Virus record (IMG/VR): IMGVR_UViG_3300033977_000108
Span: 1 to 64,000 of that record
DNA length: 64,000 nucleotides
Reading direction: 5' to 3' (one strand)
Part shown: positions 3,773 through 32,655 of the stretch, one piece after another
How the letters are laid out: the number at the start of each line of letters is the position of its first letter
Position numbering within the stretch: position 1 is the first letter of the stretch
Program-made: the position numbers and the translations under genes
The notes under the pieces: generated by a model
What the model was told of the DNA's origin: nothing
The model's database searches: none
The model's input: only the letters and a program-made list of their open reading frames with translations

Positions 3773-3796
3773 TATATTCCTCCTCTGATCATTTCG

Positions 3797-3884
3797 TCTC
3801 CCATAAAATGGAGAATGCTGCCCCTATGCTTGGCGGCTGCGCGCGGCTGAGCCACACGCAGCAATAACACAGGGGCAGCACTCC
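3797..3884 (-). other. Long intergenic stem-loop (processing site or terminator-like)
   Basis: TGCTGCCCCT (3816-3825) pairs with AGGGGCAGCA (3871-3880); the inner 12-bp hairpin has G-U pairs only on the minus strand. Confidence 0.6.
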
Positions 3885-3903
3885 CGAACTGGAGATTGTG
3901 CCG

Positions 3904-11990: not shown

Positions 11991-12202
11991 CGCTTTGCTC
12001 CTTTAGTAGCAATGGCCCCGGGCCGCTTCACCGGAAACTCAGCACATGCCTGTGCAGGATGGATACTAACCAGGTGATTAGCACCATCAAAATCGTGGGC
12101 GTAAACATCAGGATCACATAGACCACTGACTCGCCTGCGTCGCGCTCGTAAGATTTCCCGTTTTGTCCACCCTTTTTGTTTTCCTTCATGGGTAACCCCC
12201 AT
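11987..12202 (-). CDS. Hypothetical basic protein
   Basis: ORF track. Confidence 0.5.
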   Translation of the reverse strand: MGVTHEGKQKGWTKREILRARRRRVSGLCDPDVYAHDFDGANHLVSIHPAQACAEFPVKRPGAIATKGAKR

Positions 12203-12833
12203 TAGTTGCCTGCCGCACTGATACCGGGCCGCTGATTAAGGCTGGGATCCTACCAGTGGCTTTCAGCTTTCGCATTTCACTGGAGCATCTGGCAAGCACA
12301 GCCTTCTTATCCTTCAATCTCGCGCTGTCGAAAAACAAACCCCCGTCGAGGTGCGCAACCTCATGCTGGATAGCGTGGGCTAACACCCATGAATTCAGGT
12401 AGCCTGGGCTATGCCCCGCTACAACATGCATCAGGTTCCAGTCCTGGTCCCTGTATTGCAGTTCGACTACCAGGCTGCGCGCCACGTGGGCGCTGACCCC
12501 CGGGAAGCTAAGGCAGCCCTCTTCAACCACAATCCTGCCCTCCACAGAGAGTATCTCAGGATTATACATAAGAGGCAACCCTATCAGGTTTCCATCCCTG
12601 TCATAATGGTCGCTCTCTGTAAAGATGTTGAATGGCACGCAGAATCTTCTTGCGTCGCCCAATTGGATTCCCGCTAAATAATATCCATCGTTAGCTTTGC
12701 ACAGCTCGCTAATGTAGTCAATATACCACATTGGGAGCGGTCCATCCAGAGGCTTGGACTTCGTCCGCAGCAGCTCTATGTCAAAGCGGACGATTTTGAC
12801 CTCCCCTACATCGTAGGGCTGACTAATCGTCAT
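12186..12833 (-). CDS. def: Peptide deformylase (divergent motif 1)
   Basis: EGCLSFPG (motif 2), QHEVAHLDG (motif 3), YLAGIQLG (motif 1 variant). Confidence 0.88.
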   Translation of the reverse strand: MTISQPYDVGEVKIVRFDIELLRTKSKPLDGPLPMWYIDYISELCKANDGYYLAGIQLGDARRFCVPFNIFTESDHYDRDGNLIGLPLMYNPEILSVEGRIVVEEGCLSFPGVSAHVARSLVVELQYRDQDWNLMHVVAGHSPGYLNSWVLAHAIQHEVAHLDGGLFFDSARLKDKKAVLARCSSEMRKLKATGRIPALISGPVSVRQATNGGYP

Positions 12834-15109: not shown

Positions 15110-15427
15110 TCACCCTTCAACCTTTGCAGCTGACAGGCGCTGCATCTTATTATACAACGCCTTTCCTATCTTTGCAAGCGGCGCCCTCAATGGGGACCCG
15201 CCCTTTGGCGTCTTCCACTTGCGCCGCTTCTTGGGCTTCATCCTCCAGCCGCACCTTGGCTTCTTCCGTCCCAAGCCGTGAGATGGGAAGAAGCCACCCA
15301 CTGCCAGATAGCGGCAGCCACAAGAGGCATCATCTTCTTCGTACCGCCTATGCTTGCAAAAGGGGCAGGTGGTTATAGGCTTCCTGGGGCCCCTCTCCAA
15401 GTTTGCTCCGCAGACTTTATTCGACAT
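15110..15427 (-). CDS. Basic Cys-rich protein
   Basis: CPFCKH..CGC..C; basic C-terminus. Confidence 0.55.
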   Translation of the reverse strand: MSNKVCGANLERGPRKPITTCPFCKHRRYEEDDASCGCRYLAVGGFFPSHGLGRKKPRCGWRMKPKKRRKWKTPKGGSPLRAPLAKIGKALYNKMQRLSAAKVEG

Positions 15428-15581
15428 CTGCCTGTCTCTCCTTGCGCCGGCTTTCCAGCCAACTTAGGAAGAGCTTCTTTATCAGCGCGTATCCCAAGTC
15501 CGTGCGGAACACCCGGCGCGCGATAAAGTATCCAATGATTAAGCTTGCCGTAGCCACAAAAGCCACATCAACGACCCTCAT
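15417..15581 (-). CDS. Small membrane protein (54 aa)
   Basis: Own translation MRVVDVAFVATASLIIGYFIARRVF...; SD GAGGAGG. Confidence 0.6.
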   Translation of the reverse strand: MRVVDVAFVATASLIIGYFIARRVFRTDLGYALIKKLFLSWLESRRKERQADVE

Positions 15582-15609
15582 TGGCTACCTCCTCGTTGAA
15601 GATAGGATA

Positions 15610-15636
15610 AGGGGCTAGCCGTAGAGACTAGCCCCT
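15610..15636 (-). terminator. Stem-loop, possible terminator or processing site
   Basis: AGGGGCTAG/CTAGCCCCT 9-bp stem after 15673 ORF; U-tail weak. Confidence 0.4.
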
Positions 15637-15672
15637 CTAGACTTGATTACTGCGGCAGGCTCTTACCAGTGC

Positions 15673-16296
15673 CTACGCGGCAATCTCTTCGCCGGACTCC
15701 GGCCTGTCGAACAAAACGCTGCTGTTGATTGGGATGGCGTCGCTAATCGGGCCATCCGAGGCAGACACTCCTGGGTCTTCCGCCGACTCGTTGTCAAACA
15801 CGGCGGCAGGGGCGATGTCCCGATGGCCGACCAGCGCCAAGGACGGAGCCCCGTTCAGGCCGAACAGGTCAGCCCGGACCCAGGCGGAAGTCACGCCGCC
15901 ATACGGGAATTCATAGCCGCCAGGAACCTTCTTCGGATTGACAATCTTGAGGTTCAACAAGTCCCCACGCTGCAATCCAAGGCTCTTGACAGCTTCGATC
16001 ACTTCGGGCGCTTTGGTGAATACTTGCAGTGCCCGGCGCCGGCGTTGGAACGGCTTGGCTGGGTCGCCAGTCGGGTGGTAATAACGGGACCAGCCCACTT
16101 TCAGCTTCAGGAACGGCTCTCCGTCGTAGATGCCGCCGTTGTAAACGCCTTCCTCGACCGCAAACAGCGTGACATTGTACAAGTGGCCGATGTTGAACGG
16201 CTGCTTCCAGCTGTACTGGACGTCGTTCAACGTATCGTAGCGCAGGATGAGCGTCTCGTAAACACGCGGAATCCTCAATTGACTTGTGTTATCCAC
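15673..16296 (-). CDS. Hypothetical beta-rich protein with acidic tail (possible OB-fold nucleic-acid binder), paralog D1
   Basis: Shares G.PF..L..G..R, RR.LQ.F, GL.RGDLLNL, VPGG.E, VGHR.I.P with 20469..20960; acidic C-terminal tail. Confidence 0.75.
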   Translation of the reverse strand: MDNTSQLRIPRVYETLILRYDTLNDVQYSWKQPFNIGHLYNVTLFAVEEGVYNGGIYDGEPFLKLKVGWSRYYHPTGDPAKPFQRRRRALQVFTKAPEVIEAVKSLGLQRGDLLNLKIVNPKKVPGGYEFPYGGVTSAWVRADLFGLNGAPSLALVGHRDIAPAAVFDNESAEDPGVSASDGPISDAIPINSSVLFDRPESGEEIAA

Positions 16297-16329
16297 GGTA
16301 TCCTCCTTAGAGTTGATTTCAGGCTACTT

Positions 16330-17274
16330 TTACGCAGCCTGTCCTTGCTCTTGTGCTTCGGTGTCTTCACCTGCCACAACAGCAGGTGCAGGCATCTCTA
16401 CAACATTATCAGGCGCGGCCGGTGTAGCTTCCGCTCCGCCCTGCTCGGCAGGCACTGTCTGCTGTGCCGATGTAATGGCAGCGTACAGGGCACCCTCTTG
16501 GTACCCTTGTGCAGCACTACGCCAGAGGCGCAGCCAGTTCTTGAACTGCTCAAACAGCTCGACATAGATGGAGTTGTCCGAGCCTTTCTCGATGGCCTCC
16601 CTGGTCGCCGCCAAGGTCATGTGGATTGGAAACCACAAGTCTTTGCGGCTAACGCCAAGGATGGAGAACCACTTGGATAGTTTGCTGCCCAGGCCAACCC
16701 CAGGATAGCGACGCATCTCCTCCCGATTGGTCAGGTAGTCAAACATCTTCAGCTTCTCCTCTGGGCTGATCTGTTCTTCCATGATTTGAAGCACCTCTTC
16801 CTGTTGCTCTGGCGTGAAGACGCCATTGCGGCCCATCAGAGGCGCTGTGTGTTCAGGGCGCAAAGCCTTCTGCTCCCTGTATTTGCCGTGGCTCATGGCA
16901 ATACCTCCTCCAGGTGGAATCACCTGGACATTTGCTTCCATGCTACCCCTATAAAGCCCACAACGCTGGCATTTATTGGTGTAGCATTCCGTGGACTTTG
17001 ACCTGACATCAAAGCCCTCCTTACCGCGAACATAACCGGACCGGCATTCCACGGTCCAGTCATTACCTTTGCCCGTATAGAGCGTTCTGAATGCCGGGCA
17101 AAGCTCTCTGGCAGCGCCTCTCAGTTGCGAAACCATTGTGTGTAAAGCGCCTGAGAAGCGCTCAACGAACGGGCCGTTGTAGATGCCGCGCCCCAGCTCG
17201 TCGAGCAGCTGTCCACAATAAGTGGAAGTTGCTTCGACTTGCTCAAGTGCGACCATAGTAACGTCAGTATCCAC
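16330..17274 (-). CDS. Hypothetical protein (314 aa)
   Basis: Long ORF; SD AGGAGG; CQRC. Confidence 0.8.
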   Translation of the reverse strand: MDTDVTMVALEQVEATSTYCGQLLDELGRGIYNGPFVERFSGALHTMVSQLRGAARELCPAFRTLYTGKGNDWTVECRSGYVRGKEGFDVRSKSTECYTNKCQRCGLYRGSMEANVQVIPPGGGIAMSHGKYREQKALRPEHTAPLMGRNGVFTPEQQEEVLQIMEEQISPEEKLKMFDYLTNREEMRRYPGVGLGSKLSKWFSILGVSRKDLWFPIHMTLAATREAIEKGSDNSIYVELFEQFKNWLRLWRSAAQGYQEGALYAAITSAQQTVPAEQGGAEATPAAPDNVVEMPAPAVVAGEDTEAQEQGQAA

Positions 17275-17344
17275 TTCTTACCTCCTTTGGAATGCCACTG
17301 GTGCAACCAGTGGTTATTCGCATCCGTCCTGGCTTTCGTAGGTA

Positions 17345-17542
17345 TTACATCCTACCGCCGGCCAGGATGTAGAGAACGACAGGCCAGAGAAGTACGCCCT
17401 TGATATATTCAGACCTGCTGATATACATAGTCTTCACAGAATCCCAATGTATATCAGCCAGGCCCTCGACCACGAGCAGGCCTATACAAGTGTAAACAGC
17501 CAGCACAACAAAGAAGAAGAACAACCACAGACCATAGTTCAT
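17345..17542 (-). CDS. Small membrane protein
   Basis: LWLFFFFVVLAVYTCIGLLVV; SD AAAGGAGG. Confidence 0.7.
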   Translation of the reverse strand: MNYGLWLFFFFVVLAVYTCIGLLVVEGLADIHWDSVKTMYISRSEYIKGVLLWPVVLYILAGGRM

Positions 17543-17561
17543 GGCTTGGTCCTCCTTTATA

Positions 17562-17846
17562 GCAGAGCCAGTAATGTGGTTCGTCTATACCGTAGCCTAC
17601 TGTTGCTACCTAACGGTATGGCCTCTAGCCTACCCTAAAAGAACAGCAGCAGAGGAACTTATGTCCTAGACACATGGGTGTTTACTAAACAGGCACGACC
17701 AATCAGAGGCTCCTGTGGAGCTTGCTTGGAACGGTGTCCGTAAAGTGTATGCCCTTTGTTATCTGCGCTGTAGCTATTGGTGGCAAAGGTGAGGCCACCA
17801 GGCCTAAGTAACGACAGTAATATAGACGACGTATTACTGGCTCTGC
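17562..17846 (-). ncRNA. Large structured non-coding RNA candidate (about 285 nt, closed terminal stem)
   Basis: Terminal 14-bp plus 9-bp stem GCAGAGCCAGTAAT..TCGTCTATA / TATAGACGA..ATTACTGGCTCTGC; nested stems TACTGT/ACAGTA, TGGTGGC/GCCACCA, ACAGC-GCAGA/TCTGC-GCTGT, GGCAT/GTGCC, GCTCC/GGAGC. Confidence 0.75.
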
Positions 17847-17879
17847 AAGATTGTGGGCAGCGCGGAAACAACCGCCAAA

Positions 17880-18101
17880 TGATGGGGCCCTGTAAGATCA
17901 AAGGGGCGGCAGGAAGCCAGGTGGGTCGGCGGTGAGGTCCCCGGCTTCAACACATCCGCCCCTTGTAGGGGCAGGGGGACCAGCGAGGCGCTTGGCGCCT
18001 CAATCTGGCCCATCACCCGCCCCTAACTTGATGGGCTAGAACCAGTCTGCCGGGACTCGTAGGCCCTCCAACATAAGCAGACCCTCCTACGTTCTAGCCC
18101 A
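17880..18101 (-). ncRNA. Two stem-enclosed pseudoknot domains (putative ncRNA)
   Basis: TGGGCTAGAAC/GTTCTAGCCCA encloses crossing GTAGG/CCTAC and GTCTGC/GCAGAC; TGATGGG/CCCATCA encloses crossing GTCCCC/GGGGAC and AGGGGCGG/CCGCCCCT. Confidence 0.7.
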
Positions 18102-18107
18102 AGCTTA

Positions 18108-18719
18108 TCACTGCTTTGGCTCGCCGAACAGGTGCAGTTGAGCCTTTTGGTCAGGCGTGCAGGCACAAATGCAGGGGCCGCCTGTCAGATGTATGCGGCT
18201 GTTCTTGTCAGATCGGCGGACGGAGCGTCGGATACTCCCCCTCCTCTTGGCCACCGCCGTGCTGTGAATGTCCTCGTGGTAGTCGCAGTAGTGCTCGTAG
18301 TGTGTGAGTGGCCTCTCACAATGGACCATTCTACAGAGGCCTGCTGCCTTCCGCGCCGCCCTCCTGATTTGGCAGGTGGTCGGAATAGAAGCAGTGTAGA
18401 GATAGGACCTATCCCTCCGCCAGTTCCTGCCCTGTAGGTAATCAAGCCGGCTTTCATCCCATACGCGGACTGACAAACCGTACTTCTTTGATGGGATGGC
18501 GGCATCCCATAAGCGGAGAACGTGGTCGGCCAGGAAGCCCTCGTCCTCTACAATGTGGCCTCCTAAAATGTGGATAACCGAATGTATCTCCGCGTCCTTT
18601 CCTACAGGCCCGGACTGCGGCAGGCCGCGGCCAGAAGCCTGCCAGACCCAGATGGTGCGCTCGGTCAAGGTAAGCAACACGGCAGTCTTGCTGTTGGAGA
18701 TGCCGATTAGTCTAGGCAT
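18108..18719 (-). CDS. Hypothetical protein with Cys/His-rich C-terminus
   Basis: SD AAGGAGG before MPRL; CRMVHC..YCDYH. Confidence 0.65.
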   Translation of the reverse strand: MPRLIGISNSKTAVLLTLTERTIWVWQASGRGLPQSGPVGKDAEIHSVIHILGGHIVEDEGFLADHVLRLWDAAIPSKKYGLSVRVWDESRLDYLQGRNWRRDRSYLYTASIPTTCQIRRAARKAAGLCRMVHCERPLTHYEHYCDYHEDIHSTAVAKRRGSIRRSVRRSDKNSRIHLTGGPCICACTPDQKAQLHLFGEPKQ

Positions 18720-18990
18720 TGAGCACCTCCTTATAGGCAAGCAGAGTGACCACTGGCGGAACGACTTTGATCTTACCGCGGTCGCTCCTGTCCAGTGCCA
18801 TAGAATCCTTAGGCATAAGCTGGCGTGGATTTCCTTTCTCGTCGCGCACGATCCCCAACTCCTTGTCATCCAGCATCAGCTTGTAGCCGCGGGACAAAGC
18901 ACGCCGTAAGTAGCTGAAACCACGGCGTTTCTTGAGGTTGGCTGCCCTACGTCGCTCTTCTCTCAGCTGGGCAGCTTGGTTGTCAGTCAT
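18712..18990 (-). CDS. Hypothetical basic protein
   Basis: SD AGGAGG before MTDNQ. Confidence 0.65.
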   Translation of the reverse strand: MTDNQAAQLREERRRAANLKKRRGFSYLRRALSRGYKLMLDDKELGIVRDEKGNPRQLMPKDSMALDRSDRGKIKVVPPVVTLLAYKEVLNA

Positions 18991-19174
18991 GTTTCCTCCT
19001 TGGGGCGGCTCGCAGCCATTCTTCGTATCCCGCCTGTAGGATGGCACATGTTTCAGAGCAGTAGAGGCTGTTAGGCTTGGCGACATTCAAGCCGCAGTAA
19101 AGACAGAACTCTACCGATTTCTTCTTGCTTTCCTTCTCTTTCTCTTTCCTCTTGCGTTCCCTTGCATCAAGCAT
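18983..19174 (-). CDS. Zinc-finger protein (CxxCG...YCSxxC)
   Basis: FCLYCG..LYCSETC; SD GGAGG. Confidence 0.65.
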   Translation of the reverse strand: MLDARERKRKEKEKESKKKSVEFCLYCGLNVAKPNSLYCSETCAILQAGYEEWLRAAPRRKHD

Positions 19175-19254
19175 AGGGACACCTCCATTCGGAAGTAGCT
19201 GGCCCATCGGTGCAACCAGCGGCCACAACCCATTGGCTGGATTGCGGTCGCCGA

Positions 19255-19614
19255 CTACTCCTCTGGTATGTCTTCAATGCGTTCAATACACTGCTCTTCG
19301 GTTAGGCTCTCATTGGCCACCCAGGCCAGAACCTCGGCATGGCAGAGCTCTGGGGCGCACCAGCAGCCGAGAGTCTGTCCTCGCAGCTCACGCCTTGCCT
19401 TCTCCACAAGCCCAGGCGTTTCAAAGAGATAGCGGGTGAATAGCATAAGAACAGTCTTGCGGTTCTTTACATTGTCGTGCCCCAGATGGTAGGGGTTGTG
19501 GAAGTCAGATTGAGTGAAATTCCCGTGCCTGGAACAGTGCCGCCTGCCAACATAGACACAAGGCTGCTTAGAGCGGATATTGATGACGAGTGGGTGTTGT
19601 TCGCGCATCGTCAA
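19255..19614 (-). CDS. DUF4326-domain protein
   Basis: VYVGR..F.NPY..G..R..V...F..YL..ARRELRG.TLGCWCAP..CHAEVL. Confidence 0.85.
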   Translation of the reverse strand: MTMREQHPLVINIRSKQPCVYVGRRHCSRHGNFTQSDFHNPYHLGHDNVKNRKTVLMLFTRYLFETPGLVEKARRELRGQTLGCWCAPELCHAEVLAWVANESLTEEQCIERIEDIPEE

Positions 19615-19772
19615 CCTCCTATCTCTACCATTTCATAACCGTGCTCGGTTAGAAACAGTTCAAACGTGTTGTAGACGTCCTCCGCATACATAAGAGGCGT
19701 CGGGTCAGAGTACTGAGACAGAAAGCTCTCAATGGTAAGACGCAAGAGCAGTCTAATCATTTCTTTATTCAT
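19611..19772 (-). CDS. Hypothetical protein
   Basis: SD GGAGGAG before MNKEM. Confidence 0.6.
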   Translation of the reverse strand: MNKEMIRLLLRLTIESFLSQYSDPTPLMYAEDVYNTFELFLTEHGYEMVEIGG

Positions 19773-19840
19773 TGACTCCTCCTTTCTTCGGTTGGGCTGG
19801 TGGGGACGGAGGGGCTTGAATTCCATCCCCATCAAGCTTA

Positions 19841-20185
19841 TCAGAGATTGCCTTTCAGGCTCTTATCAAGCCAGTAGCGTAGAACGCCGATGGCTTTGGC
19901 GGCCTTTCTGGCATAGTCTGTGTCGCCCTTCTGCGCCTGGTGGTTGGCTACCCAGACAAACTCGTAGAACTTACGGGCAGTGTCGCGGCTCAGCTCAAAG
20001 AAAACCATCACTGGGACATTATGCCGCCAGGCGAGCTGCTCATCAATACCAGACTGCAAGCGGTCAGTGGTGATGTGGCAGGCTCTGACGATTTCAGCAT
20101 TCGTCTCCGACGATTTTGCGGCTTCCTTGAGATACTGGGTCAAAAAGGCCGCGTATTGTCGTGATGCTTCTATCTTGATTTTCAC
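19841..20185 (-). CDS. Hypothetical helical protein
   Basis: SD AAAGGAGG, GTG start. Confidence 0.7.
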   Translation of the reverse strand: MKIKIEASRQYAAFLTQYLKEAAKSSETNAEIVRACHITTDRLQSGIDEQLAWRHNVPVMVFFELSRDTARKFYEFVWVANHQAQKGDTDYARKAAKAIGVLRYWLDKSLKGNL

Positions 20186-20203
20186 GGATACCTCCTTTCG
20201 CTC

Positions 20204-20455
20204 AACCCACGGGCACCCAGCTAAAGCTTAGCCGCCCTATGCTGGGCGTTCAGCCCGTGGGCTGATTGTGACCCATACCCAGTAGAGGCAGGGAGCCGAA
20301 TCTACACTCCGCCCAAGACGACGGGGAGTAGGTGGTCCTCGGGTGGGACACCGTATTGCCTCTATTTCGGACCCTCCCCAAAGTATAGGCCACAATCAAC
20401 TCACGATGAGTTGGCGCCAGGGCACGGCAACCCCGACGAAGCATGCCCTGGGGTC
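20204..20455 (-). ncRNA. Large structured non-coding RNA candidate with pseudoknot (about 250 nt)
   Basis: 14-bp stem ATTGTGGCCTATAC/GTATGGGTCACAAT (G-U on minus strand); crossing GGGAG..CCGAA/TTCGGCTCCC and TAGAGGCA/TGCCTCTA; AGCCCACGGGC/GCCCGTGGGTT; CAGGGCATG/CGTGCCCTG. Confidence 0.75.
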
Positions 20456-20468
20456 AGCCAATCGCCGA

Positions 20469-20960
20469 CTACTGCAACTCGGGCTCTGTTTCAGCCCAAG
20501 ATAGCCGGTCGGGAAGAGGCTTGATTTCCCGATGGCCGACATACTGGATGGCAGGTACGCCATCCTTGACAAGCAGCCGAGAGGCACAAAAAGCCTTCGT
20601 CTTGCCCTCAAAGCCGCCGGGAACCTCATGTGTGCGCTCCACAATAAGGTTTAGCAAATCCCCGCGGTTGAGGCCCATGTCAAGGATGTACTGCATGGCT
20701 TCCGGTATGGATACGAAAATCTGAAGCGGCCTGCGCTTCCACTTTCCGTCCCAGAACCGGCCGAAGCCTAACCTCAAGTTGATGAACGGCTTACCGGCAT
20801 CCGGCCCACGCTGGAACATCCCTACTGACATGCCGAAATACATGGCGGCTTTCAGTATGGAAGCAAGCCGGGTTGTCTGTACCACGGCATTGATGCCGTT
20901 GACAGAGATGTTCTCTGTGATCACGAACTGGCTTAAAAATGGTGCCCATCTTTTAGCCAT
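20469..20960 (-). CDS. Hypothetical beta-rich protein, paralog D2
   Basis: Paralog of 15673..16296; SD AAGGAG. Confidence 0.75.
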   Translation of the reverse strand: MAKRWAPFLSQFVITENISVNGINAVVQTTRLASILKAAMYFGMSVGMFQRGPDAGKPFINLRLGFGRFWDGKWKRRPLQIFVSIPEAMQYILDMGLNRGDLLNLIVERTHEVPGGFEGKTKAFCASRLLVKDGVPAIQYVGHREIKPLPDRLSWAETEPELQ

Positions 20961-21058
20961 GGGTTTATCTCCTTTCTCCAGTCCCCAGCGGACTGGCGCC
21001 ATACCGCAGATGGGCTACGGCATGGTGTCAAGCCGCCAAAGGCTACCAAGCCCGGGCA

Positions 21059-21914: not shown

Positions 21915-22173
21915 GGCTCACCTCCTCTCTCATTACTTGTATTACCCTGGAAACAGAGCACATAGCTGCCTTCTCAATGAAGTGAGCGTGTCCTTCAGCC
22001 TCTATGCGCCCCAGCCTTCTGATGTCCTTCTGTATTTGCCACCCAAGACCACTCTGTCTATTCCCGCCGTGGGTCAGAAGGACATGTCTTCCGTACTCAA
22101 TACCGCCTACCGGCTTGCCGCACCGGAAAAAGATGTAAAACTGCCTTCCACAGTCGGAACAGGTCTTAATCAT
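21856..22173 (-). CDS. Hypothetical protein with CxxC...HxxxH
   Basis: MIKTCSDCGRQF...RHVLLTH; SD GGAGGAGG. Confidence 0.55.
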   Translation of the reverse strand: MIKTCSDCGRQFYIFFRCGKPVGGIEYGRHVLLTHGGNRQSGLGWQIQKDIRRLGRIEAEGHAHFIEKAAMCSVSRVIQVMREEVSHGRQEEALQEGERQAKVVR

Positions 22174-22599
22174 TCCTCCTCCTTTCTCCTTCCTCCCAAC
22201 CTTCAACCAATCTGCCTTCCTCGGCTGGAACAAAGCTCAAACTTCAACCCTTATAAGGCAGATTCCCCTGCCTTATAAGTAATCCCATCGGAATCCGCCT
22301 GCTTCTTGCGAATTCCCAGGCTTTTATGTAATCCCTTGCCTGCCAAGCAGCCAGGCTTAGGAACTACAAAGAAATAAGAACGTAAAGAGATTGCCCCGTA
22401 CTTCAGCCTTCGGGCTAACATACCAGCCTGGAGGTTGTTGGCATAAGGTACTACCTCCTTTCCAGTACAAGATTTACTCCTGGGGGTACTACCTTTCATC
22501 CCAAGACCCGCTTGCCTTCAACCTTCAACCAGCAAGCTCAATACATTCCATACTTTAGCAGGGTCCCAGCGTGTTAGGCCCACCAGGACCCTGCCCCGC

Positions 22600-22782
22600 T
22601 CAACAAGCGAGCGATGTTGCGTGCATACGGTATCTGCCAGGCAATACAAGCCTGTACTCATCGTCCGGCAAAGTGCCGTACAGATCCTCCAAATCGAGGA
22701 TCCGTCTCCTCTTCTTCGACTTCGGATTAGGAGGACCTTTACCCTTACGCTTCATATGCCCGTTTGCTCGACCTCCGGGCAT
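22600..22782 (-). CDS. Small basic protein
   Basis: SD AAGGAGG; KRKGKGPPNPKSKKRRR. Confidence 0.55.
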   Translation of the reverse strand: MPGGRANGHMKRKGKGPPNPKSKKRRRILDLEDLYGTLPDDEYRLVLPGRYRMHATSLAC

Positions 22783-22799
22783 AAAACACCTCCTTTCTT

Positions 22800-24449
22800 C
22801 TACTTACGCTTCCAGCCCGCCGAGGTCTTCAAGGCATACAACATACCTCTAGCCTCTTTCTGGCTGGTTGTCCCTGCCAGCCTCTCAGAGTACATCAAGA
22901 GGCCGGCTTCAGACTGCGACGGATGAAAACGGATAAAGTTGCCCTTCAGGATAGCTCCTGTCGGTCCCCTGCCTTGGGTAGTCACTTCAGCCACATCACC
23001 CTTCAGCAGGTCCCTATTCCGCCACATCCAATCCCTATACTCGTCGGGGATGGCAAAACTGCCTATCTCCCCAACGCCACTGCCTGTCCTTACATCCAGC
23101 GGCTGGACAAGAATACCACCCAATGTGCCCTTATACTTGCCAGCCCCCTCAATGAAATCAAGGACTTCCACATCAATCGTATCCCTGGCCTTGCCTTTAT
23201 AAACCAGGTCTATGGCTCTGCCATCCACCGGCTTCACCATAATCCCTTCAGACCAAGGCAGCCCTCTTGGATCATTCACCACAAGCTCATAATAAGCCTC
23301 CAGTGGCATCCAGCCGGGCTTACGCTCAACGATGTGGACATGCTTGTTGAATGGCCTTATCCCAGCGACCGCTTCTTCCATCATCGCCCGCCGCTCAGAA
23401 TACGGTAAGTTACTGACATTCTTACCTTTATACTTCAGAATGTCAGTCACATAAGCCTCAATCGGCCCATGCTCCCGCTGATAACCAATAGCCTTATCAG
23501 CTCCGCTGTTCAGCAGACCGCCCAGCCTACTGGCGCCGTCCTTGTGGAACAGCTCCACTCTGAACAGAGTGCCATGCATCTCCGGCTTGAACAATAGCCG
23601 ATCCAGCAACACATGGCTCCTATTCTGCAGCCATTCAAGAGCAGGCAGCTTGAATGTATAGCATGGAACATCCCGCCAGCTTTGAAAGATAGCTCTTTCC
23701 AACCCTTCTCTGCTGGTGCTTTCAATAGCCATGGATGCCATACTACCATCCATCTTACGCTCAACGATAACTCCTTTAGGGTCAAGGCTTGCCAGCCATT
23801 CCAGTGCTTTCAGAGCAGCCTTTGGCTTGGGAACCATCACCCCTCTGTCCTTCATCCTAACCAGAAGGCCTCGTCCTTTCTCCATGCCTTCTGGCCGGCG
23901 GACAGAATACGAACCCTTGAACTCACCACGGGGTATGTTAAAATCGAACTCCCGGGTACCGGGCTTTATGCCAACAGCCACAAAGTCCCAATGCCTCCCT
24001 GCCACCTCGGCATCGTGCTGATGTATGTTCGCCTTGGCGACACTCAGCCTATCGCCAACCTTCAAGACAATGTCTTCCTTATACAAGAGCTTCTTCATGC
24101 CCTTGCCTCGGCCCTCGCCTATCAAGCCGCTGAAATCATTGACTTTATGCGGCTCGTCTTCCCCTACCAGCACAGGACTACCCGTCTTCGTAGGAAACGG
24201 CTTGGCTCCTCGACGGGGCAGCAGATGAAGCTTCTCGTAATGATTGGCACCAGGCCCACTAACCAGCCTGCCGTCTATATCGCTCTTCGACAGCAGCCTG
24301 GCAGACAATAGTCTGGTAGCAGGCTTTACTTTGACCGCGGCAACGGATGAAAGCATACCCATGCCAGCATCCCAGAAAGTGTTCCAGCATACCTTGGACA
24401 AAGCAGCCGCACCATCAAGAATAGCGGTAATTCGTTTCCTAATACCCAC
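22800..24449 (-). CDS. lig: ATP-dependent DNA ligase with LigD phosphoesterase-like N-terminal region
   Basis: ERKMDG (I), FRVELF (III), YVTDILKYKG..LPYSERR (IIIa), SEGIMVK (IV), YKGK (V), OB domain GAGKYKGTLGGILV; N-terminal HQHDA..GRHWDF. Confidence 0.88.
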   Translation of the reverse strand: MGIRKRITAILDGAAALSKVCWNTFWDAGMGMLSSVAAVKVKPATRLLSARLLSKSDIDGRLVSGPGANHYEKLHLLPRRGAKPFPTKTGSPVLVGEDEPHKVNDFSGLIGEGRGKGMKKLLYKEDIVLKVGDRLSVAKANIHQHDAEVAGRHWDFVAVGIKPGTREFDFNIPRGEFKGSYSVRRPEGMEKGRGLLVRMKDRGVMVPKPKAALKALEWLASLDPKGVIVERKMDGSMASMAIESTSREGLERAIFQSWRDVPCYTFKLPALEWLQNRSHVLLDRLLFKPEMHGTLFRVELFHKDGASRLGGLLNSGADKAIGYQREHGPIEAYVTDILKYKGKNVSNLPYSERRAMMEEAVAGIRPFNKHVHIVERKPGWMPLEAYYELVVNDPRGLPWSEGIMVKPVDGRAIDLVYKGKARDTIDVEVLDFIEGAGKYKGTLGGILVQPLDVRTGSGVGEIGSFAIPDEYRDWMWRNRDLLKGDVAEVTTQGRGPTGAILKGNFIRFHPSQSEAGLLMYSERLAGTTSQKEARGMLYALKTSAGWKRK

Positions 24450-24822
24450 GCCGTCTCCTCCTTTCTCTGTAATTCATGATGACATCCTTGCTAACTATGC
24501 CAATAACCGCAGCTGCCATCAAGCTCAGCAGCTCTATAGCCCAGTTAGCTAAATGCCCTAGACTGATGGCGATAGCGCAGGTAAGCACCCCCAGCATGTA
24601 CTTGCTGTGCAATTTGAGATGCCCGCTAATCCAGATGACAATCATACTTACCAGCAGAGCCGGAGCATAGGCAGCCATCAACACTATTACCGCCGCCTCT
24701 ATCAGGCTCTTGACCACGTTCCACTTCCAGCTCTGATACTTACCATCCCAGAAGAAGTTCTTCAGAGCCAGAAGTCCAAACAAGCCTGCTATCAGGCTTA
24801 TGTACAAGGCTCGTCTGGTCAT
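24439..24822 (-). CDS. Multi-TM membrane protein
   Basis: Three to four hydrophobic helices; SD AAGGAGG. Confidence 0.75.
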   Translation of the reverse strand: MTRRALYISLIAGLFGLLALKNFFWDGKYQSWKWNVVKSLIEAAVIVLMAAYAPALLVSMIVIWISGHLKLHSKYMLGVLTCAIAISLGHLANWAIELLSLMAAAVIGIVSKDVIMNYRERRRRRGY

Positions 24823-24873
24823 ACACTTACCTCCTTTCAGAGCGGCTTTGTAGTCGCTCGGAAGTGGGCTCCG

Positions 24874-25143
24874 TCAATACAAAGCCCACTCCCCAGACCC
24901 TACAACACAATCCTGTCTGGTCAGAGCCTTGGAGAACCTGCCATAATCCAGGTCCTCCAGGTCATAATCAACAACTACCATGACCCTATCCCAATCCACA
25001 AAAGCTATGAGATAGTAATGATGGCCGTTCTTGAAACAATACCACCTGCCATCATCCTGCAACTCATAGCCTTGAAGAGAGATAGTCCTAAGAAACCAAG
25101 GCGGAAGGCGGTCTAACACCGCCTTCCGTTCAATGGTAGTCAT
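24874..25143 (-). CDS. Hypothetical protein
   Basis: ATGA coupling. Confidence 0.65.
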   Translation of the reverse strand: MTTIERKAVLDRLPPWFLRTISLQGYELQDDGRWYCFKNGHHYYLIAFVDWDRVMVVVDYDLEDLDYGRFSKALTRQDCVVGSGEWALY

Positions 25144-25316
25144 TGTGGATCAACCACTGACCCCTGGAACCAGCTGCCAACCTTGCTGAATACAGGAGAC
25201 AGCTTGGTAACAACAGCAGCCCGGTCCTGCGCATAACTGCGGCCAGACAGGGCATACCAAACAATAACCCCTGCCGCAGCTGCTACACCGAGCAGAACTG
25301 CTACTCCAGTCTTCAT
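25140..25316 (-). CDS. Small membrane protein (58 aa)
   Basis: Own translation MKTGVAVLLGVAAAAGVIVWYAL...; SD AAGGAGG. Confidence 0.65.
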   Translation of the reverse strand: MKTGVAVLLGVAAAAGVIVWYALSGRSYAQDRAAVVTKLSPVFSKVGSWFQGSVVDPQ

Positions 25317-25615
25317 CGGTCACCTCCTTTCTTCGGTCTGTAGGGCACGTACTTGCCGTCTACAGCTCTTCCAATATACCGATTAGTACGCTGGTCCATC
25401 AACTGATAGACCTGGTGGCCCTCCCTGGCCAAACGAGCCCAAACAGAGGTCTTATTAGGATTCTGCTGGACTAGCTTGGCAGGGCCACGCCTAAACGGCA
25501 TATTCTCCAACTGCCTGAGATGTTGCTTGGATGTATAGGTAATGGGCTGAGCCCATTCACCTACCCGTACGACGACCTGGTTCATCTGCTGCAAGCACGA
25601 AGTCAAGAAGCCCAT
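25313..25615 (-). CDS. Hypothetical protein
   Basis: SD GGAGG before MGFLT. Confidence 0.65.
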   Translation of the reverse strand: MGFLTSCLQQMNQVVVRVGEWAQPITYTSKQHLRQLENMPFRRGPAKLVQQNPNKTSVWARLAREGHQVYQLMDQRTNRYIGRAVDGKYVPYRPKKGGDR

Positions 25616-25833
25616 GTTATCTGCCTCCTTATCAAAGCACCAACTGCAAAGAAAGGCCATAACAAAGTCTTGAGCAGATACTCCAGGAAAATGAGCCTAC
25701 GCCGGCTGAACCGCCAGCATCCCAGTGCTGAAAGGAGCGGGATGCCAACGACGGTATAAGCCCAGCCTGCCAGGAAGAACAGGAAGTAAATCAATCTGAG
25801 ACTAACCACAGGAACCACCTCCTTCCTAAGCAT
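25603..25833 (-). CDS. Two-TM membrane protein
   Basis: Hydrophobic helices LIYFLFFLAGWAYTVVGI, LLWPFFAVGALI. Confidence 0.65.
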   Translation of the reverse strand: MLRKEVVPVVSLRLIYFLFFLAGWAYTVVGIPLLSALGCWRFSRRRLIFLEYLLKTLLWPFFAVGALIRRQITWAS

Positions 25834-25924
25834 TTGATAAAATCAACGGCTATATCGCCGATAATGATACCCATTACTATACCGGCAACATCAGCCGCGA
25901 AAGGCCAGCAAATGAATGCTTTCT

Positions 25925-26248
25925 TCATTTCGCCTCCCTTCCAAAGAAAGCACACCACAGAGGAACGATAAAGAACACAACGAAGAAGTTCATTATCGTC
26001 CCACCCAGAGCAAAATCAACGCTCAACGGATTAGTAATCCCATGGGTGCCGTAATTGACGCCCTCTGTCACAGCCAACGTCACTATCTTGTGCCTATTGA
26101 CCCATGACAGAATGGCTCTCGTCGGCCGTCTGTCCTTCATGCCGAAGAAAGCTACCATCTCGTTCATCTTCAATACTCCAAGCCAGCCAAACATCCAAAA
26201 GACCAGCCCAGAGATGAAGCTTGAACGCGAACTAGGAGTGAATGTCAC
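25925..26248 (-). CDS. Membrane protein
   Basis: Multiple TM segments; SD GGAGG. Confidence 0.7.
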   Translation of the reverse strand: MTFTPSSRSSFISGLVFWMFGWLGVLKMNEMVAFFGMKDRRPTRAILSWVNRHKIVTLAVTEGVNYGTHGITNPLSVDFALGGTIMNFFVVFFIVPLWCAFFGREAK

Positions 26249-26251
26249 AAA

Positions 26252-26833
26252 TCACCTCCCTTCCTTAAGGTCTATCCAAGCCCGTCTCGCACCCCACAAG
26301 CCCTTCCAGGTATACTTGACGGTGTTCTTGATGACGAACCAAGAGCCTTTGCGAATGCCTTTGCTTATGGCTCTGGCAGCACGCGCGCTGGGTTTATTAC
26401 GCCTTATCTCCCTCTCACGCGCCTGCCGCTCAAAGTACTCTCTCATCATGGCTGTGTTCTCCTTTTCAGTATTCACTGCCCAAAAGACGGCACAAATGAA
26501 AAGGATAATCCATCCTATTCCTGGAACCATAAGCATGAATAGGATGAAGAACAGCCTCTTCCAGTAAAGCTTGAGAAGCCTCCACCAAAGCCCCTTCCAC
26601 TTGATGTGCTCAATATCACAGGCCTCGTGAAGCAGAGCTTCATACTCCTCAAGCTTTATCACCGGCTTGTCTGGCTTTGGATGTGCCAAATTGTGCGCCA
26701 ATTGCCACAAGCCTCGGATGAACAGCACCACCATGATAAGAATGGCTATCAAACCGATAAGTATCTCGGCGAAGAGCCACCACATCGTGGGGTAATACGC
26801 TTGCATCATTTGACGTAGTTGAGGATCGCCCAA
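26252..26833 (-). CDS. Membrane protein with basic C-terminus
   Basis: Two TM regions; SD GGGAGG. Confidence 0.75.
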   Translation of the reverse strand: MGDPQLRQMMQAYYPTMWWLFAEILIGLIAILIMVVLFIRGLWQLAHNLAHPKPDKPVIKLEEYEALLHEACDIEHIKWKGLWWRLLKLYWKRLFFILFMLMVPGIGWIILFICAVFWAVNTEKENTAMMREYFERQAREREIRRNKPSARAARAISKGIRKGSWFVIKNTVKYTWKGLWGARRAWIDLKEGR

Positions 26834-27150
26834 ACACCACCTCCCTTCTGCTTCGGCTTACGCCTCTGCCGAAGCCAATTCACCGCCAGGCCTTCCACGA
26901 ACCACTTGAAGGCCTGATACGGAGCAACCTTACGAATCATAAATACGAGGGCATCCGCCACTTTTATCGCTCGCTCCTCGTATTTATTCTTCGGCACAGG
27001 CTTGTGCTTGCGGATTGTTTCATCCACAGGACTCGCCTGTTCACCAGGCAGCCGCCAGAACAAGGCCTGCATTTTATGCCGCCTGAACCGCATCCTGACC
27101 CAGCTGGCGCCGGCAGCGGCGCTCTCAAGAGCCAATAACAGACCAAGCAT
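26806..27150 (-). CDS. Hypothetical protein
   Basis: SD GAGG; hydrophobic N-terminus. Confidence 0.6.
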   Translation of the reverse strand: MLGLLLALESAAAGASWVRMRFRRHKMQALFWRLPGEQASPVDETIRKHKPVPKNKYEERAIKVADALVFMIRKVAPYQAFKWFVEGLAVNWLRQRRKPKQKGGGVWAILNYVK

Positions 27151-27153
27151 GGG

Positions 27154-27570
27154 TCACCTCACAAACCAGTGGAAAGCCCAATGAGCCAGGCCGAGCCATC
27201 CACCAACGATAATCGCCGACGCCAAAGCAAGGAGCAAGCCCCAAACAGCCTTGGCTTTATCGGGTGCTTTCGGAGTGTCCGGCTTCGCCAAGCCGCAGAG
27301 AAAGCGGATGTTAGGAATAAGAGCGGTGACTTCACTACGCTCAACGCCATATTCATAACAATACTGAAACACGGCTTCGGCAACCGTCTTGGCAAGATGG
27401 ACAAACTCCGGAGAGCCATGAGGCACTCCTTTCTCCTCATGACCCTGGGCGCGAAGAGAATAATCAGCAATCTTACTCTCCAAGCGCTTGAAGTCCCACC
27501 ACTTATGGGCACGACGGCAGGAAGCCTTGATGCCAACATAAGCGTCTTTCACTTCATTGTAGGCTTTCAT
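27154..27570 (-). CDS. Hypothetical protein with C-terminal TM
   Basis: SD AGGAGG before MKAYN; C-terminal VWGLLLALASAIIVGGWLGL. Confidence 0.7.
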   Translation of the reverse strand: MKAYNEVKDAYVGIKASCRRAHKWWDFKRLESKIADYSLRAQGHEEKGVPHGSPEFVHLAKTVAEAVFQYCYEYGVERSEVTALIPNIRFLCGLAKPDTPKAPDKAKAVWGLLLALASAIIVGGWLGLAHWAFHWFVR

Positions 27571-27659
27571 AGCCCACCTCCTTTCACGTTGCTTACGGAC
27601 AATTAAGTCCTTGATGCTCATAGACTTACGCTATGAGCATCGGGGAACTAATCCTCCTT

Positions 27660-27773
27660 TCAGTCTTTCTTCTTGGTAGCGACATAGCCGGCGAGAAAGC
27701 TGAAAACAGCCGCCAACACAAACAAGCAAATAGACACAAGAAGCGGCCCATTTATAAACATGTGGTAATGCAC
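27660..27773 (-). CDS. 37-aa single-TM micro-protein
   Basis: SD GAGGAGG plus GTG; MHYHMFINGPLLVSICLFVLAAVFSFLAGYVATKKKD. Confidence 0.55.
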   Translation of the reverse strand: MHYHMFINGPLLVSICLFVLAAVFSFLAGYVATKKKD

Positions 27774-27776
27774 AGC

Positions 27777-27881
27777 TTAACCTCCTCTCTTCCTGATTTC
27801 CCGCCGCACCATGATGCCAAAGGCTGTAAAGAAAAAGACCAGCCCTAGCATGATGGAAACGACAAAGATGGCGTCGTACAT
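27777..27881 (-). CDS. 34-aa single-TM micro-protein
   Basis: SD GGAGG; MYDAIFVVSIMLGLVFFFTAFGIMVRREIRKRGG. Confidence 0.5.
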   Translation of the reverse strand: MYDAIFVVSIMLGLVFFFTAFGIMVRREIRKRGG

Positions 27882-28165
27882 TCCATTCCTCCTTCCCGTC
27901 TGTCCAAGCCGGCCAGCTCCATAGCAGCAATAACACTAAGCATGTCAGAAAAACTGACAAGCTCAGCGAGTGCTCCAATGATAGCTATAAAGGCCTCAGT
28001 CGCCTGTTCAGGCGACTTATCAGCCAAAGCCCGCATGAACAAGATACATGCTATCTCCGTCTTACTAATAACCACAATCTTCTCCTTTCGTCTGCGTTCA
28101 GTCCTGAACGCAGACCAAAAGACACCAAGTGCCGGGTAGAAAGGTGAGGAATCCCTATTCACCAA
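27845..28165 (-). CDS. Hypothetical protein
   Basis: ORF track. Confidence 0.5.
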   Translation of the reverse strand: MVNRDSSPFYPALGVFWSAFRTERRRKEKIVVISKTEIACILFMRALADKSPEQATEAFIAIIGALAELVSFSDMLSVIAAMELAGLDRREGGMECTTPSLSFPSC

Positions 28166-28216
28166 GAGGACAAATGAATAGAGAACAATCTATCCGGCAC
28201 CCAGTGCTAACCACAG

Positions 28217-28489
28217 CTAGGCTTTATCCGGCCCAAACAGACCACAGACAATCTGTGTCCATTCCAAAGGGCCGAAATAAGCATAGAGAATGTAAGCCAT
28301 CAGTGCGCTGGGGCAACTGACCCCAACCGCATCACAAGCACACCGAATGTGGGCATCAACAATCTCTTCTGTCAAATTCAACTCCTTGGCAATCGACAGA
28401 GGAGTCTGGCCTTTCATCATCATAGCCACTACCCTACATTCTGTAGCAGTCAGCGTTTTACCGCCTAACAGCAATTTAGCCTTAGCCAT
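28217..28489 (-). CDS. LuxR/sigma-region-4-type HTH DNA-binding protein
   Basis: LTATECRVVAMMMKGQT..SIAKELNLTEEIVDAHI matches the LuxR C-terminal pattern LTxRExEVL..L..G....EIA..L.LS..TV..H. Confidence 0.8.
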   Translation of the reverse strand: MAKAKLLLGGKTLTATECRVVAMMMKGQTPLSIAKELNLTEEIVDAHIRCACDAVGVSCPSALMAYILYAYFGPLEWTQIVCGLFGPDKA

Positions 28490-31400
28490 TGTTCACCTCC
28501 TTTCCGGCGTCCGGGACGCCTTGATTTAGGACTTTCAAAGGCACATACAGCCGAAGGTCAAGGGCATAAGGACTTGTCCCAGAAGACCCTATATGCCAAG
28601 CCAATGCCCCTCTCACCTCGCCGACCGCCGGGTCGGTAATCCAAGGGAATAGATGAATAAGCGTATCCTTGGTAATCCAGCCTACATGCTGGTCTGTCTC
28701 ACTGAACACCTCAACCGCGGGTTCTCCCTCATACAGAGTCGGCTTCAGTTTGACCACAGAACCCGCCATAGCAATAAACTGCCTACGAGCTTGTTCCAGT
28801 TCAGCACGCTTATCACCAGTCGCTGCCTTGAGCTTTGTCTCCCAGCCATCCACTACACGGACAGTAAGACCGGAAGACGCCCCACAAGGAGGCGTCTCCG
28901 GCTTATCACTGACCAGCAGAAAGCCATGGTCAAGAGTATACTCGCCCTCGGACAGCGGCTCAATCAGCTCACCAATAGCATTGTGAAGATGAGCTGTAGT
29001 TCCCTTGATTCTGAATGTCATACCAGTTGGGTCATAGTCCGTCTTCTCCACTACCACTTGCTCGCGGACTTGCCCATAATCATTCTCAAAGCTGTCCTTG
29101 GTAACAGCTCTGTCATACCACCTAAATGGCGTGCGCTTGGTTGTGAGCCCGCACGCGCGCAGCGCCATGATAAAGCCATCCACAGTATGCTTGCCATACA
29201 GGATGCCGTCCCGGACCTCTCTGAGGTCCATCTCAGCCCCCTCATTGCGTGGTATCTCTTTATCAGAGGTGGGATGAGGAAGATTGTTATAGATATTCCG
29301 AGCCAGAGCCACATAGACTTCGGTCGCCAGCCCGGACGCCATAATGAAGGAATGAACACGCTCCTCTGCAAAGAAATAGGCAGAGATAGCAGCCTCATCC
29401 TCGGTCATTATTACCCTGTCGCGGTGGTCTTTGTGAGCGGCAAGGAACTCATTCTTCTTCGTCTGCAGCAGGCCATTATAATAAACCTGCGCTTGATTCG
29501 CCAGGCGAGCTGCAGAATCACTGACCTGGAAGGACTCCATCTCAGGAGGCACACGCCAGATATGGCTCCAATCCTCTGCTTTGGCTTCTTCCACAGCCTG
29601 CGCATAACGATGGCGCCACGCTTCCAGCTCCGCGCTGATAGGAGTAGGAATAGGAATAGGCTCATCAGGAGTTCCCAGCCTACTGACTGGTATCCTGCCT
29701 CGCCCTTCCCAACCACCCTCCCACATCCAGGCGCCAGCCACAGGACACTCCCTCCTGAAGCTGGAACAAGCTGCCTGCTCCCTATCTATAGGCAGCCCGG
29801 TCTGTTTAGAGCTATCAATAATGCGTTGAGTCTCACCACAGACCATCGGCATCTCGGACTCCCAGAAGTCCTTCTCCATCCAGGCGATAGCCGCCTTGAT
29901 CTTCTCGTTCTGCGGCATAGCCCGGAGAGTATCCATTACCAAGCTATAGTTATTGAAGATGTCGATATACCACAGCTCAGTATTCACCGCACAACCGATG
30001 CCAAGCCTGCTCTCCTTGAGCTTGCCCAGCATATCGCAGATTACATCCTCGTCATAGCTGGGCTTCTCAATAGCCTTAGTAAAACGCCTTGGCACAGGCT
30101 CCACAACCGCTTCCTCCGGCCTGAATTTGACATTGAACGCAGGCAGAGCGCGCAGGAACGCATTGATAGCCGGGTCGAAGATGAAGATATCAGAATCATC
30201 ACAATCGCCCACATCCTGTCCCTTTACCGGCTTGGGATAATCAGGATGGATAAAGATACAAGTAGCCTCTTTGTCCAGAGCCCGCAGAGCAGGATGGCTA
30301 ATAGCATCCAGGAACCTGGCATCGTTCCTGGAACCATTTGGATTCCTGATGAGGGTGCCTTGACCAACAAAGCCACCGAAATAACACTGGCCTGGTTTCA
30401 GCACACCACCTTCCGGCTTGGGCCGGCCCCAGCCATCAAATGCCGTCGGGTCGGCAGTCAGATGACCCCTAAGAGCACAGGCTCTGAAATCGCCATGCGG
30501 GTCATCCAGCCTCGCCGGCACACGGAATCCAATCCTTGCCCGCCCGGGGTCATGGTCAAATCCCTTCATACGCAGAGCGGACAGCCGCCTGGCCCTACGA
30601 AAGCCAGGCATCCTATTCAGCCCCTTGACCCCGGACTCAAGGAGCTTCCAAACCTTCCAGTCCTCAATAGTGGCACGTATTGGCCGTATCTCAGTCTCGC
30701 CTCGCTCATCCACTATCTCCTCAAAGTCCATCGGCTTATAAAAGCCGATGGACTGCTTGAGGCCGGTAAGGTCTTCCTCTTCAAGCTCTTTGAAGATTCT
30801 GCCCATATACTCATCTGTAAGAATCTCAAAGAACTTACCGTCCAGCGCGTGAGCGAGCTCGAAATTGATGGCAGTTTGAATGTCAGTCCGTGCCGGACTG
30901 CCATGCTTCTCAGAGAGCACACCCAGGAAGACATTGCCATCCCAAGCTCTGACAGAAGACTTGGGCTCATAGACAATCAAGTCCACGTTCTTCATGTCAC
31001 GAACCACGAGGACATTTGCCTTCATCATTCCCGGGCTCATCAGGCCAGTGATGGCGAATAAATCCCCTGGACTGGCAGACTTACGATGCAGCATGCGCTT
31101 GGCAAAGCGCGCGCTGCAATAGGCCTGACCAGCTACCCTCCAATCCGGCCACCGGCCGGAAGGAGGAGCAAATAGAATATCCAAAGTCCCGCCCTCTTCG
31201 AGTTTGACTTTGATTACCTCATCAAACTCATTCAGGCGATACCGGCCCACTTCCTTGCCAAACAGGGCATAAGGATGAGGAGCCAGCAGCCTCTGCAGCC
31301 GCTTCGGGATATCCGGCTTGAACTCAGGAATATCCAAGCCAAACAGACGCCAGGCCTCCGCGCTAGGCAGATGCCTGTCAATCATCACACCGCTAAGTCC

Positions 31401-32646: not shown

Positions 32647-32655
32647 ACATCCTCC

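Follow-up and report, generated by a model that had tools for sequence, protein, structure and literature searches.

The lambda N-leader and sib are leader and intercistronic hairpins processed by the host RNase III. In the processing stalks of rRNA operons, long-range pairing of flanking sequences juxtaposes the ends of the enclosed RNA in an RNase III-cleavable stem. Paired termini recur in elements of other kinds. MITE-like repeats such as Correia, ERIC and RUP measure 100-300 bp, are best conserved at their tips, occupy intergenic sites where they can be co-transcribed and are in some cases sensitive to RNase III. Invertons of the fimS type and those of Bacteroides have an inverted repeat flanking a segment upstream of a gene, and the msr-msd region of retrons carries the a1/a2 repeats. 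The precursor of T7 polycistronic mRNA contains five RNase III processing signals, and an idealised E. coli RNase III substrate comprises two helical turns (22 bp), with cleavage modulated by internal loops (PMC3867540).

The element analysed here (17562..17846, minus strand) is a single-copy, 285-bp imperfect inverted repeat whose MFE structure is a long interrupted hairpin. It resembles the T7 early sites (R1.1), the lambda N-leader and sib in being an intergenic hairpin with internal loops between genes of the same strand, and it lies just 5' of the ribosome-binding site of the next cistron, as the T7 and lambda RNase III sites do. Those sites span ~50-70 nt, whereas the element extends over 285 nt, with arms of ~85-90 nt and an apex of 107 nt, and there is no sequence relationship between them. 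Its cleavage, unlike that of the T7 and lambda sites, is a prediction only. The rRNA stalks are alike in their long-range stem, but the RNA enclosed by the element bears no sign of a structured or conserved product. The element is best classed as a large, unique and non-conserved hairpin, an unusually big case of the known intercistronic phage hairpin; the original prediction, which saw in it a novel large multibranch RNA, over-interpreted it.

The window (the whole 64,000-nt stretch analysed) covers the initial 64 kb of a jumbo-phage genome, a virus record of 204,633 bp that has direct terminal repeats, and the only public run that contains it comes from a peat metagenome. The genes for terminase, portal and major head protein are located at 43-55 kb. 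Judged by the portal, the nearest isolates are the jumbo myoviruses of the Bacillus phage 0305phi8-36 group (~33% identity), which are too distant for a comparison of synteny, and neither blastn nor megablast found nucleotide similarity to GenBank phages. From ~1 to 34 kb genes run leftward on the minus strand, as do all those flanking the element; the turn in GC skew at ~34 kb is away from the element. The element sits in a non-coding spacer of 565 nt (17543..18107, minus strand) between two leftward genes; nowhere else does the genome run so long without a credible ORF. A coding region in this spacer was ruled out by stops in all six frames. An assembly artefact was ruled out too, as an independent assembly of the source run matches 15200-20800 exactly, at 66.7x word depth.

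Downstream of the element lies a 65-aa gene with two hydrophobic segments (17345..17542, minus strand; ATG at 17542), identified from the ORF list and the sequence. Its Shine-Dalgarno (SD) sequence AAAGGAGG, read from the sequence at 17551..17558 (minus strand), begins 3 nt past the end of the hairpin, and the original prediction was right in placing that end directly before the SD of a small membrane gene. The neighbourhood is otherwise poor in recognizable functions. Pfam and PHROG models identified among the neighbours only a DUF4326 protein, a weak methyltransferase-like match and an RlpA-like lipoprotein, most proteins matching nothing, and ten neighbouring proteins scanned against PADLOC models gave no match. 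Two genes at 15673-16296 and 20469-21002 (both minus strand) encode a pair of paralogous proteins, 33% identical and sharing the motif RGDLLNL...VPGG, that match no Pfam, PHROG or PADLOC model.

The two arms of the element are most complementary at their tips. On the minus strand, the 5' half of a perfect 14-bp terminal stem is GCAGAGCCAGUAAU (17833..17846) and the 3' half AUUACUGGCUCUGC (17562..17575), both located by an inverted-repeat search and in the MFE structure. This is the longest perfect inverted repeat at a spacing of <=400 nt in the 204.6-kb genome, where 15 such repeats of >=12 bp occur at that spacing, against 2-6 in shuffled genomes. The terminal stem claimed in the original prediction, bringing the two ends together, is hence present and highly non-random. 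Beyond the perfect repeat and a short gap, 9 more bases are common to both arms. The arms, delimited by the helices of the MFE structure and by alignment, comprise ~85 nt on the 5' side (17762..17846, minus strand) and ~92 nt on the 3' side (17562..17653, minus strand), and enclose an apical interior of ~107 nt (17654..17761, minus strand). Complementarity decays inward from the perfect tips with many indels, the arm alignment containing 67 Watson-Crick columns, 13 mismatches and 27 gap columns.

The predicted stem proceeds from the 14 bp through a 3x5 internal loop to segments of 10+6 bp, 9 bp and 8 bp, followed by further helices; the longest uninterrupted helix is the 14-bp one, less than two helical turns. 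The inner stems listed in the original prediction all recur in the minus-strand MFE structure. Its 9-bp stem is there a 10-bp helix (9 Watson-Crick pairs and 1 G-U pair), and TACTGT/ACAGTA, a helix containing GGCC/GGCC, and ACAGC+GCAGA/UCUGC+GCUGU are likewise formed, together with GUGGCCUC/GAGGCCAU and a 9-bp helix with three G-U pairs. The GC content of the element is 49.5%, against 61.7% in the rest of the spacer.

The element folds far better than chance. The minus strand of 17562-17846 has an MFE of -116 kcal/mol, compared with -82 +/- 4.7 kcal/mol for dinucleotide shuffles (z -7.2), the plus strand one of -116.7 kcal/mol (z -5.6), and none of 200 shuffles folded as well. The stability is distributed very unevenly, however, between arms and interior. 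Shuffling one arm costs ~33 kcal/mol (z -9.7), whereas shuffling only the 107-nt interior hardly alters the energy (z -1.5, matched by 5 of 100 shuffles). Folded alone, the interior has a z of -1.8 and is equalled by 9 of 200 shuffles. The arm duplex by itself contributes -88 of the -116 kcal/mol, against -37.6 +/- 5.1 kcal/mol for shuffled arms. Since the excess stability comes entirely from pairing between the arms, a multibranch junction is no better supported than chance, and the interior of the MFE structure consists of one irregular hairpin and one small hairpin in place of the junction with four or more hairpins that had been claimed. As modelled, then, the element is a long interrupted hairpin encoded by a 285-bp imperfect inverted repeat and not a multi-helix junction RNA. 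The case carries a general caution, in that a very strong folding z-score may stem wholly from a simple inverted repeat and be uninformative on complex RNA structure.

Nor do the two strands differ in a way that would mark one of them as the functional RNA. G-U pairs had been described as confined to the minus strand, the strand of the flanking genes, whereas we count 12 in the plus-strand MFE structure and 7 in that of the minus strand. The helix GUUACUUAG/UUAGGUAGC does acquire 3 G-U pairs on the minus strand, and the plus strand gains G-U pairs of its own by extension of the terminal stem. Mirroring the MFE structure of each strand onto the other loses 8-10 kcal/mol. An alignment of the arms that is independent of energy, read on the minus strand, contains 4 mismatches of the G·U type and 5 of the A·C type. 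The sequence favours neither strand, and there is no sign that either matters.

Searches for known RNAs and for further copies of the element returned nothing that matches it. The Rfam 15 covariance models gave no match at gathering score over the whole window and, at E<=10 over 17300-18200, only miRNA and pestivirus noise outside the element, in agreement with the original statement that hallmarks of known RNA families are missing. A tRNA or tmRNA was rejected as an identity for the element, as ARAGORN detected neither in the window. ROOL, GOLLD, HEARO/omega RNA and the 6S/SRP rods are likewise a few hundred nucleotides long, and ROOL and GOLLD share the phage context, but these RNAs have intricate conserved cores where the element has a random-like one, and none of their covariance models matched at E<=10. 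There is no second copy in the phage's own genome, no copy among GenBank phages by blastn or megablast, and no match in IMG/VR to patterns of the paired termini. The 23-base terminus shared by the arms is absent from IMG/VR, JGI metagenome contigs and GTDB genome contigs, and among the source-run contigs there are no alternative joints and, at >=80% identity, no further contig similar to the element. No homologue was found in the phage collection, IMG/VR, or the metagenome, genome and source-run contigs, so that covariation, including compensatory base changes, is not measurable.

The locus could nonetheless be compared with one syntenic relative, recovered through the neighbouring proteins. 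Word-based searches with the 314-aa and 207-aa neighbours returned no relative, and neither the portal protein nor an alignment of the 207-aa family found one in IMG/VR. When 1.84 billion representatives were searched exhaustively with HMMER, however, a single relative emerged, P0003, 35% identical and encoded on a 3.4-kb ENA contig (L005). A search with P0003 led in turn to P0004 on a further contig, L006, which ends short of the spacer; both contigs encode homologues of the paralogous pair described above. On L005 the spacer precedes, in this order, the gene of a 72-aa protein that has two hydrophobic segments, an additional gene of 113 aa, and homologues of 306 aa and 190 aa, the latter 42% identical to the 207-aa protein of the window. 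The 65-aa protein of the window has weak similarity to the 72-aa protein, which holds the same position.

The spacer of L005, 254 nt long, lacks a counterpart of the element (best local alignment 18, against 17.5 +/- 2.3 for shuffles). Its absence from this closest relative shows the element to be dispensable for the module. In its place, between a conserved hairpin described below (HP1) and the SD of the small transmembrane gene, L005 has an unrelated 116-nt hairpin with an 11-bp perfect closing stem (-50.5 kcal/mol, z -4.7). At this site structure is kept while sequence is not, and the hairpin of L005 hints at selection for structure there.

What the two spacers do share is HP1, a hairpin occupying the first ~85 nt of the spacer (18022..18106, minus strand; 446-528, plus strand, in L005), recognized by its identity between the phages. 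It begins a few bases past the upstream stop codon. Two blocks are identical in L005, 18076-18088 (13 nt) and 18041-18068 (28 nt), giving a core of ~48 nt with the sequence AGGAGGGTCTGCT..TGT..GAGGGCCTACGAGTCCCGGCAGACTGGT, and an outer stem pairs 18091-18101 with 18032-18042. The enclosing stem differs between the two phages, GGGCTAGAAC/GTTCTAGCCC against GGGCTGGAC/GTCCAGCCC, with a compensatory change of A-T to G-C and the loss of one base pair. This identity is kept although the flanking proteins of the two phages share only 35-42%. Moreover, the upstream boundary of the shared module falls exactly at HP1, beyond which the genes of the two phages are unrelated. It contains an SD-like AGGAGG, and 8 nt on an ATG (window) or TTG (L005) opens the peptide M[L/S]EGLRVPADW; the perfect nucleotide identity across these codons argues for constraint at the level of nucleic acid.

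HP1 is single-copy in the genome, has no match in Rfam and was not found by a scan of IMG/VR with its core. A 19-mer of the core has 19 exact matches in the metagenome and genome collections, all of them chance occurrences within coding sequence. One 110-nt contig of the source run (depth 30) is similar to HP1 over 18041-18092 (5 differences), diverges thereafter and may represent a third variant, from another phage. HP1 is a better candidate than the element for a functional RNA or DNA element of the spacer, and it is the more promising lead of the two.

Between HP1 and the element lie two GC-rich hairpins in tandem, HP2 (17966..18025, minus strand; 62 nt, -44.9 kcal/mol, z -6.5) and HP3 (17900..17964, minus strand; -33.4 kcal/mol, z -3.4), with a common base stem AGGGGCGG/CCGCCCCU. 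HP3 is followed by UUUGAUCUU and is terminator-like. Scans near the element found neither a consensus sigma-70 promoter nor a minus-strand terminator; the long loop of HP3 could have hidden an intrinsic terminator from the scan. A weak promoter-like sequence, TTGGCG-17 nt-CACAAT (17878-17850), has 8 of 12 matches, which is under the scan threshold, and would start transcription approximately where the element begins.

A hairpin ahead of an SD is a recurrent arrangement in this genome. In the minus-strand block of 1-34 kb, we folded the 70 nt before 53 SD-plus-start sites and compared them with 600 positions drawn at random from that block and strand. The segments before SDs fold to a mean of -20.6 kcal/mol, as opposed to -17.9 kcal/mol at random positions (Mann-Whitney p 0.0045), and 26% of them reach <=-25 kcal/mol, as opposed to 11% (Fisher p 0.003). 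A number of strong hairpins stop no more than a few bases from SDs of the AAAGGAG type. Hairpins end right at the SD of the genes starting at 20185, 24822, 20960, 32385 and 33216, and near 28078 the stem at 28090-28115 abuts the AAAGGAG of a GTG start.

Because the element has the same placement as these hairpins, and L005 a different long hairpin at the same site, we tentatively read it as an oversized member of the class, a cis-acting intercistronic or leader hairpin of the RNase III type that would serve the small gene with two transmembrane segments. The element would be part of the phage's leftward transcript, where its ~85-90-nt arms would pair into an interrupted duplex beneath a loosely structured apex of ~107 nt. 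This duplex would be a substrate of the host's double-strand-specific RNase III or else would merely act as a very stable 5' structure. Cleavage or folding would part the downstream cistron from the upstream RNA, and the stability and translatability of the mRNA for the small membrane protein would be set thereby, on the model of the lambda N-leader hairpin and of the RNase III sites that separate T7 early genes. The original prediction had also proposed an RNA excisable by RNase III. A hairpin cleavable by the host enzyme is still a reasonable reading, because the long terminal stem is real and highly non-random; the multibranch RNA that it was thought to enclose is unsupported.

The predicted fold does offer the extended helix of about two turns, interrupted by internal loops, that characterizes RNase III substrates (arm duplex of -88 kcal/mol). 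Several points nevertheless weigh against reading the element as a processing hairpin. It is absent from L005, its longest unbroken helix has 14 bp, and the phage itself lacks RNase III, no such protein and no dsRBD protein being found in its complete genome. At 285 nt the element is several-fold above known processing hairpins and the other hairpins of this genome, and a DNA-level or neutral palindrome would fit the strand symmetry equally well. If processing were shown, the locus would give the T7/lambda paradigm of RNase III-controlled early expression a jumbo-phage case, with a small membrane protein as its subject.

The alternative that comes closest is a neutral or selfish palindrome, born of an inverted duplication (for example by template switching) or left as a MITE-like relic, and now decaying in a tolerant, fast-evolving spacer. 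We consider this rather unlikely, although much of the evidence is compatible with it. Perfect tips with inward decay by indels are what terminal inverted repeats look like, the balance of G·U and A·C mismatches (4 to 5) is that expected without selection at the RNA level, both strands fold equally around an unstructured interior, the GC content departs from that of the remaining spacer, and the element is missing from syntenic L005. It further shares with MITE-like repeats its size, its terminal inverted repeats (14 bp and 9 more bases) and its intergenic site. MITE-like repeats are not, however, expected to stand alone as the element does, in a single copy both in the genome and among the source contigs (>=80% identity), with no representative in the collections searched and no match to its 23-base arm terminus in IMG/VR, JGI metagenome or GTDB genome contigs. 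Its flanks (CTT / TAT; ...AATCTT - element - TATAAA...) have no target-site duplication, the three transposase families searched for, IS110 and DDE_Tnp_1 among them, are absent from the complete phage genome, and the presence of another long hairpin at this site in L005 hints at selection for structure. A site acting at the level of DNA, either an inverton that switches the small membrane gene or a replication or recombination site extruded as a cruciform or single-strand hairpin, also accords with the strand symmetry of the fold, and a perfect 14-bp inverted repeat around 257 bp immediately upstream of a gene has the geometry of fimS and Bacteroides invertons, in which short perfect inverted repeats surround ~200-300 bp before a gene. 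Such a site is nevertheless improbable. No serine or tyrosine recombinase (Resolvase or Phage_integrase domains) is encoded in the complete phage genome, although an enzyme of the host might serve instead, neither strand of the element contains a sigma-70-like promoter, and the complementarity reaches ~90 nt inward, further than an inverton needs. The source-run contigs, at 66.7x, show one orientation with no flipped form and no strand-switch joints, which is weak evidence as contigs drop minor variants. The GC skew, finally, turns at ~34 kb and not at the element.

The original reading, a stand-alone stable non-coding RNA cut out at the terminal stem, its ends perhaps joined, and acting in trans as a protein decoy or regulator, is in our judgement also improbable. 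The terminal stem does juxtapose the 5' and 3' ends, the terminator-like HP3 lies ~50 nt upstream with the weak promoter-like TTGGCG-17-CACAAT just before the element, and an Rnl-type RNA ligase and a polynucleotide kinase-phosphatase (PNKP) are encoded 11-13 kb off. But the promoter match is under the scan threshold, no terminator follows the element, which runs straight into the SD, and long near-perfect helices are atypical of compact functional RNAs. A novel large multibranch phage RNA is further contradicted by a core that behaves like shuffled sequence, by the lack of a strand signal, of Rfam similarity, of any homologue and hence of covariation, and by the absence of the element from L005. 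Circularisation of the RNA is pure speculation, and nothing ties the ligase and PNKP to this locus. The fullest version of the idea, in which a ~250-nt RNA is excised, perhaps sealed by the phage's Rnl ligase and PNKP, and persists as a stable linear or circular molecule acting in trans (for instance as a dsRNA decoy for a sensor of the host), with L005-type hairpins filling the same role in relatives, is very improbable. Least likely of all, and effectively refuted, is an RNA that serves a mobile or defence system as guide or template, in the manner of a retron RNA, omega RNA or bridge RNA. The paired ends and long hairpin look superficially like msr-msd, and a small protein with two transmembrane segments lies downstream, yet the complete genome encodes no reverse transcriptase (RVT_1), no TnpB-type domain and no IS110 transposase, and the ten neighbours have no PADLOC match and no relevant Pfam or PHROG family. 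The missing enzymes, together with uninformative neighbours, dispose of the retron, omega RNA and bridge RNA readings and of an inverton driven by the phage itself. Against these alternatives, the oversized intercistronic hairpin is the reading that we tentatively retain.

Other features of the genome were noted in passing. The block at 22000-34000 (minus strand) has a strongly negative GC skew, its sense RNA being G-rich. Very stable local structures (z -8 to -12) occur at, for example, 24450-25312, 27900-28220, 31700-32020 and 3796-3895; many end at SDs, and some of those in the 22000-34000 block exceed the element in folding energy per length. The 65-aa ORF itself contains a perfect inverted repeat of 12 bp around an 18-nt loop (17417-17458; GCTGATATACAT...ATGTATATCAGC); none is reported within the L005 homologue of this gene. 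The Rnl-type RNA ligase (PF09414 and a PHA02142 OB domain) and the PNKP, which together form the classical tRNA-repair pair of phages, are encoded at 3904-5085 and 5746-6780 (both minus strand), and a peptide deformylase at 12186-12833.

The 12-mer ATACTAACCAGG, in its fuller form (C)TATACTAACCAGGAG, has 9 copies in the genome, at 12063, 33643, 40281, 49458, 69574, 73028 and 95751 on the plus strand and at 127600 and 127738 on the minus strand. Most are on the strand of the local genes, and the motif may combine a promoter of the phage with a ribosome-binding site, possibly for late genes. An ORF of 1879 aa (58464-64000, plus strand, ending at 64103) is rich in repeated 10-12-mers, among them GCTATACCGG and TATACCGGCT, some of which lie 9 nt apart; it probably encodes a repetitive protein of structural or fibre type. 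The genome has three tRNA genes, all of them beyond the window and on the minus strand (124521-124597, 145230-145304 and 199831-199907); they are Met-CAT, Phe-AAA and Pro-TGG, the Phe-AAA anticodon being unusual.
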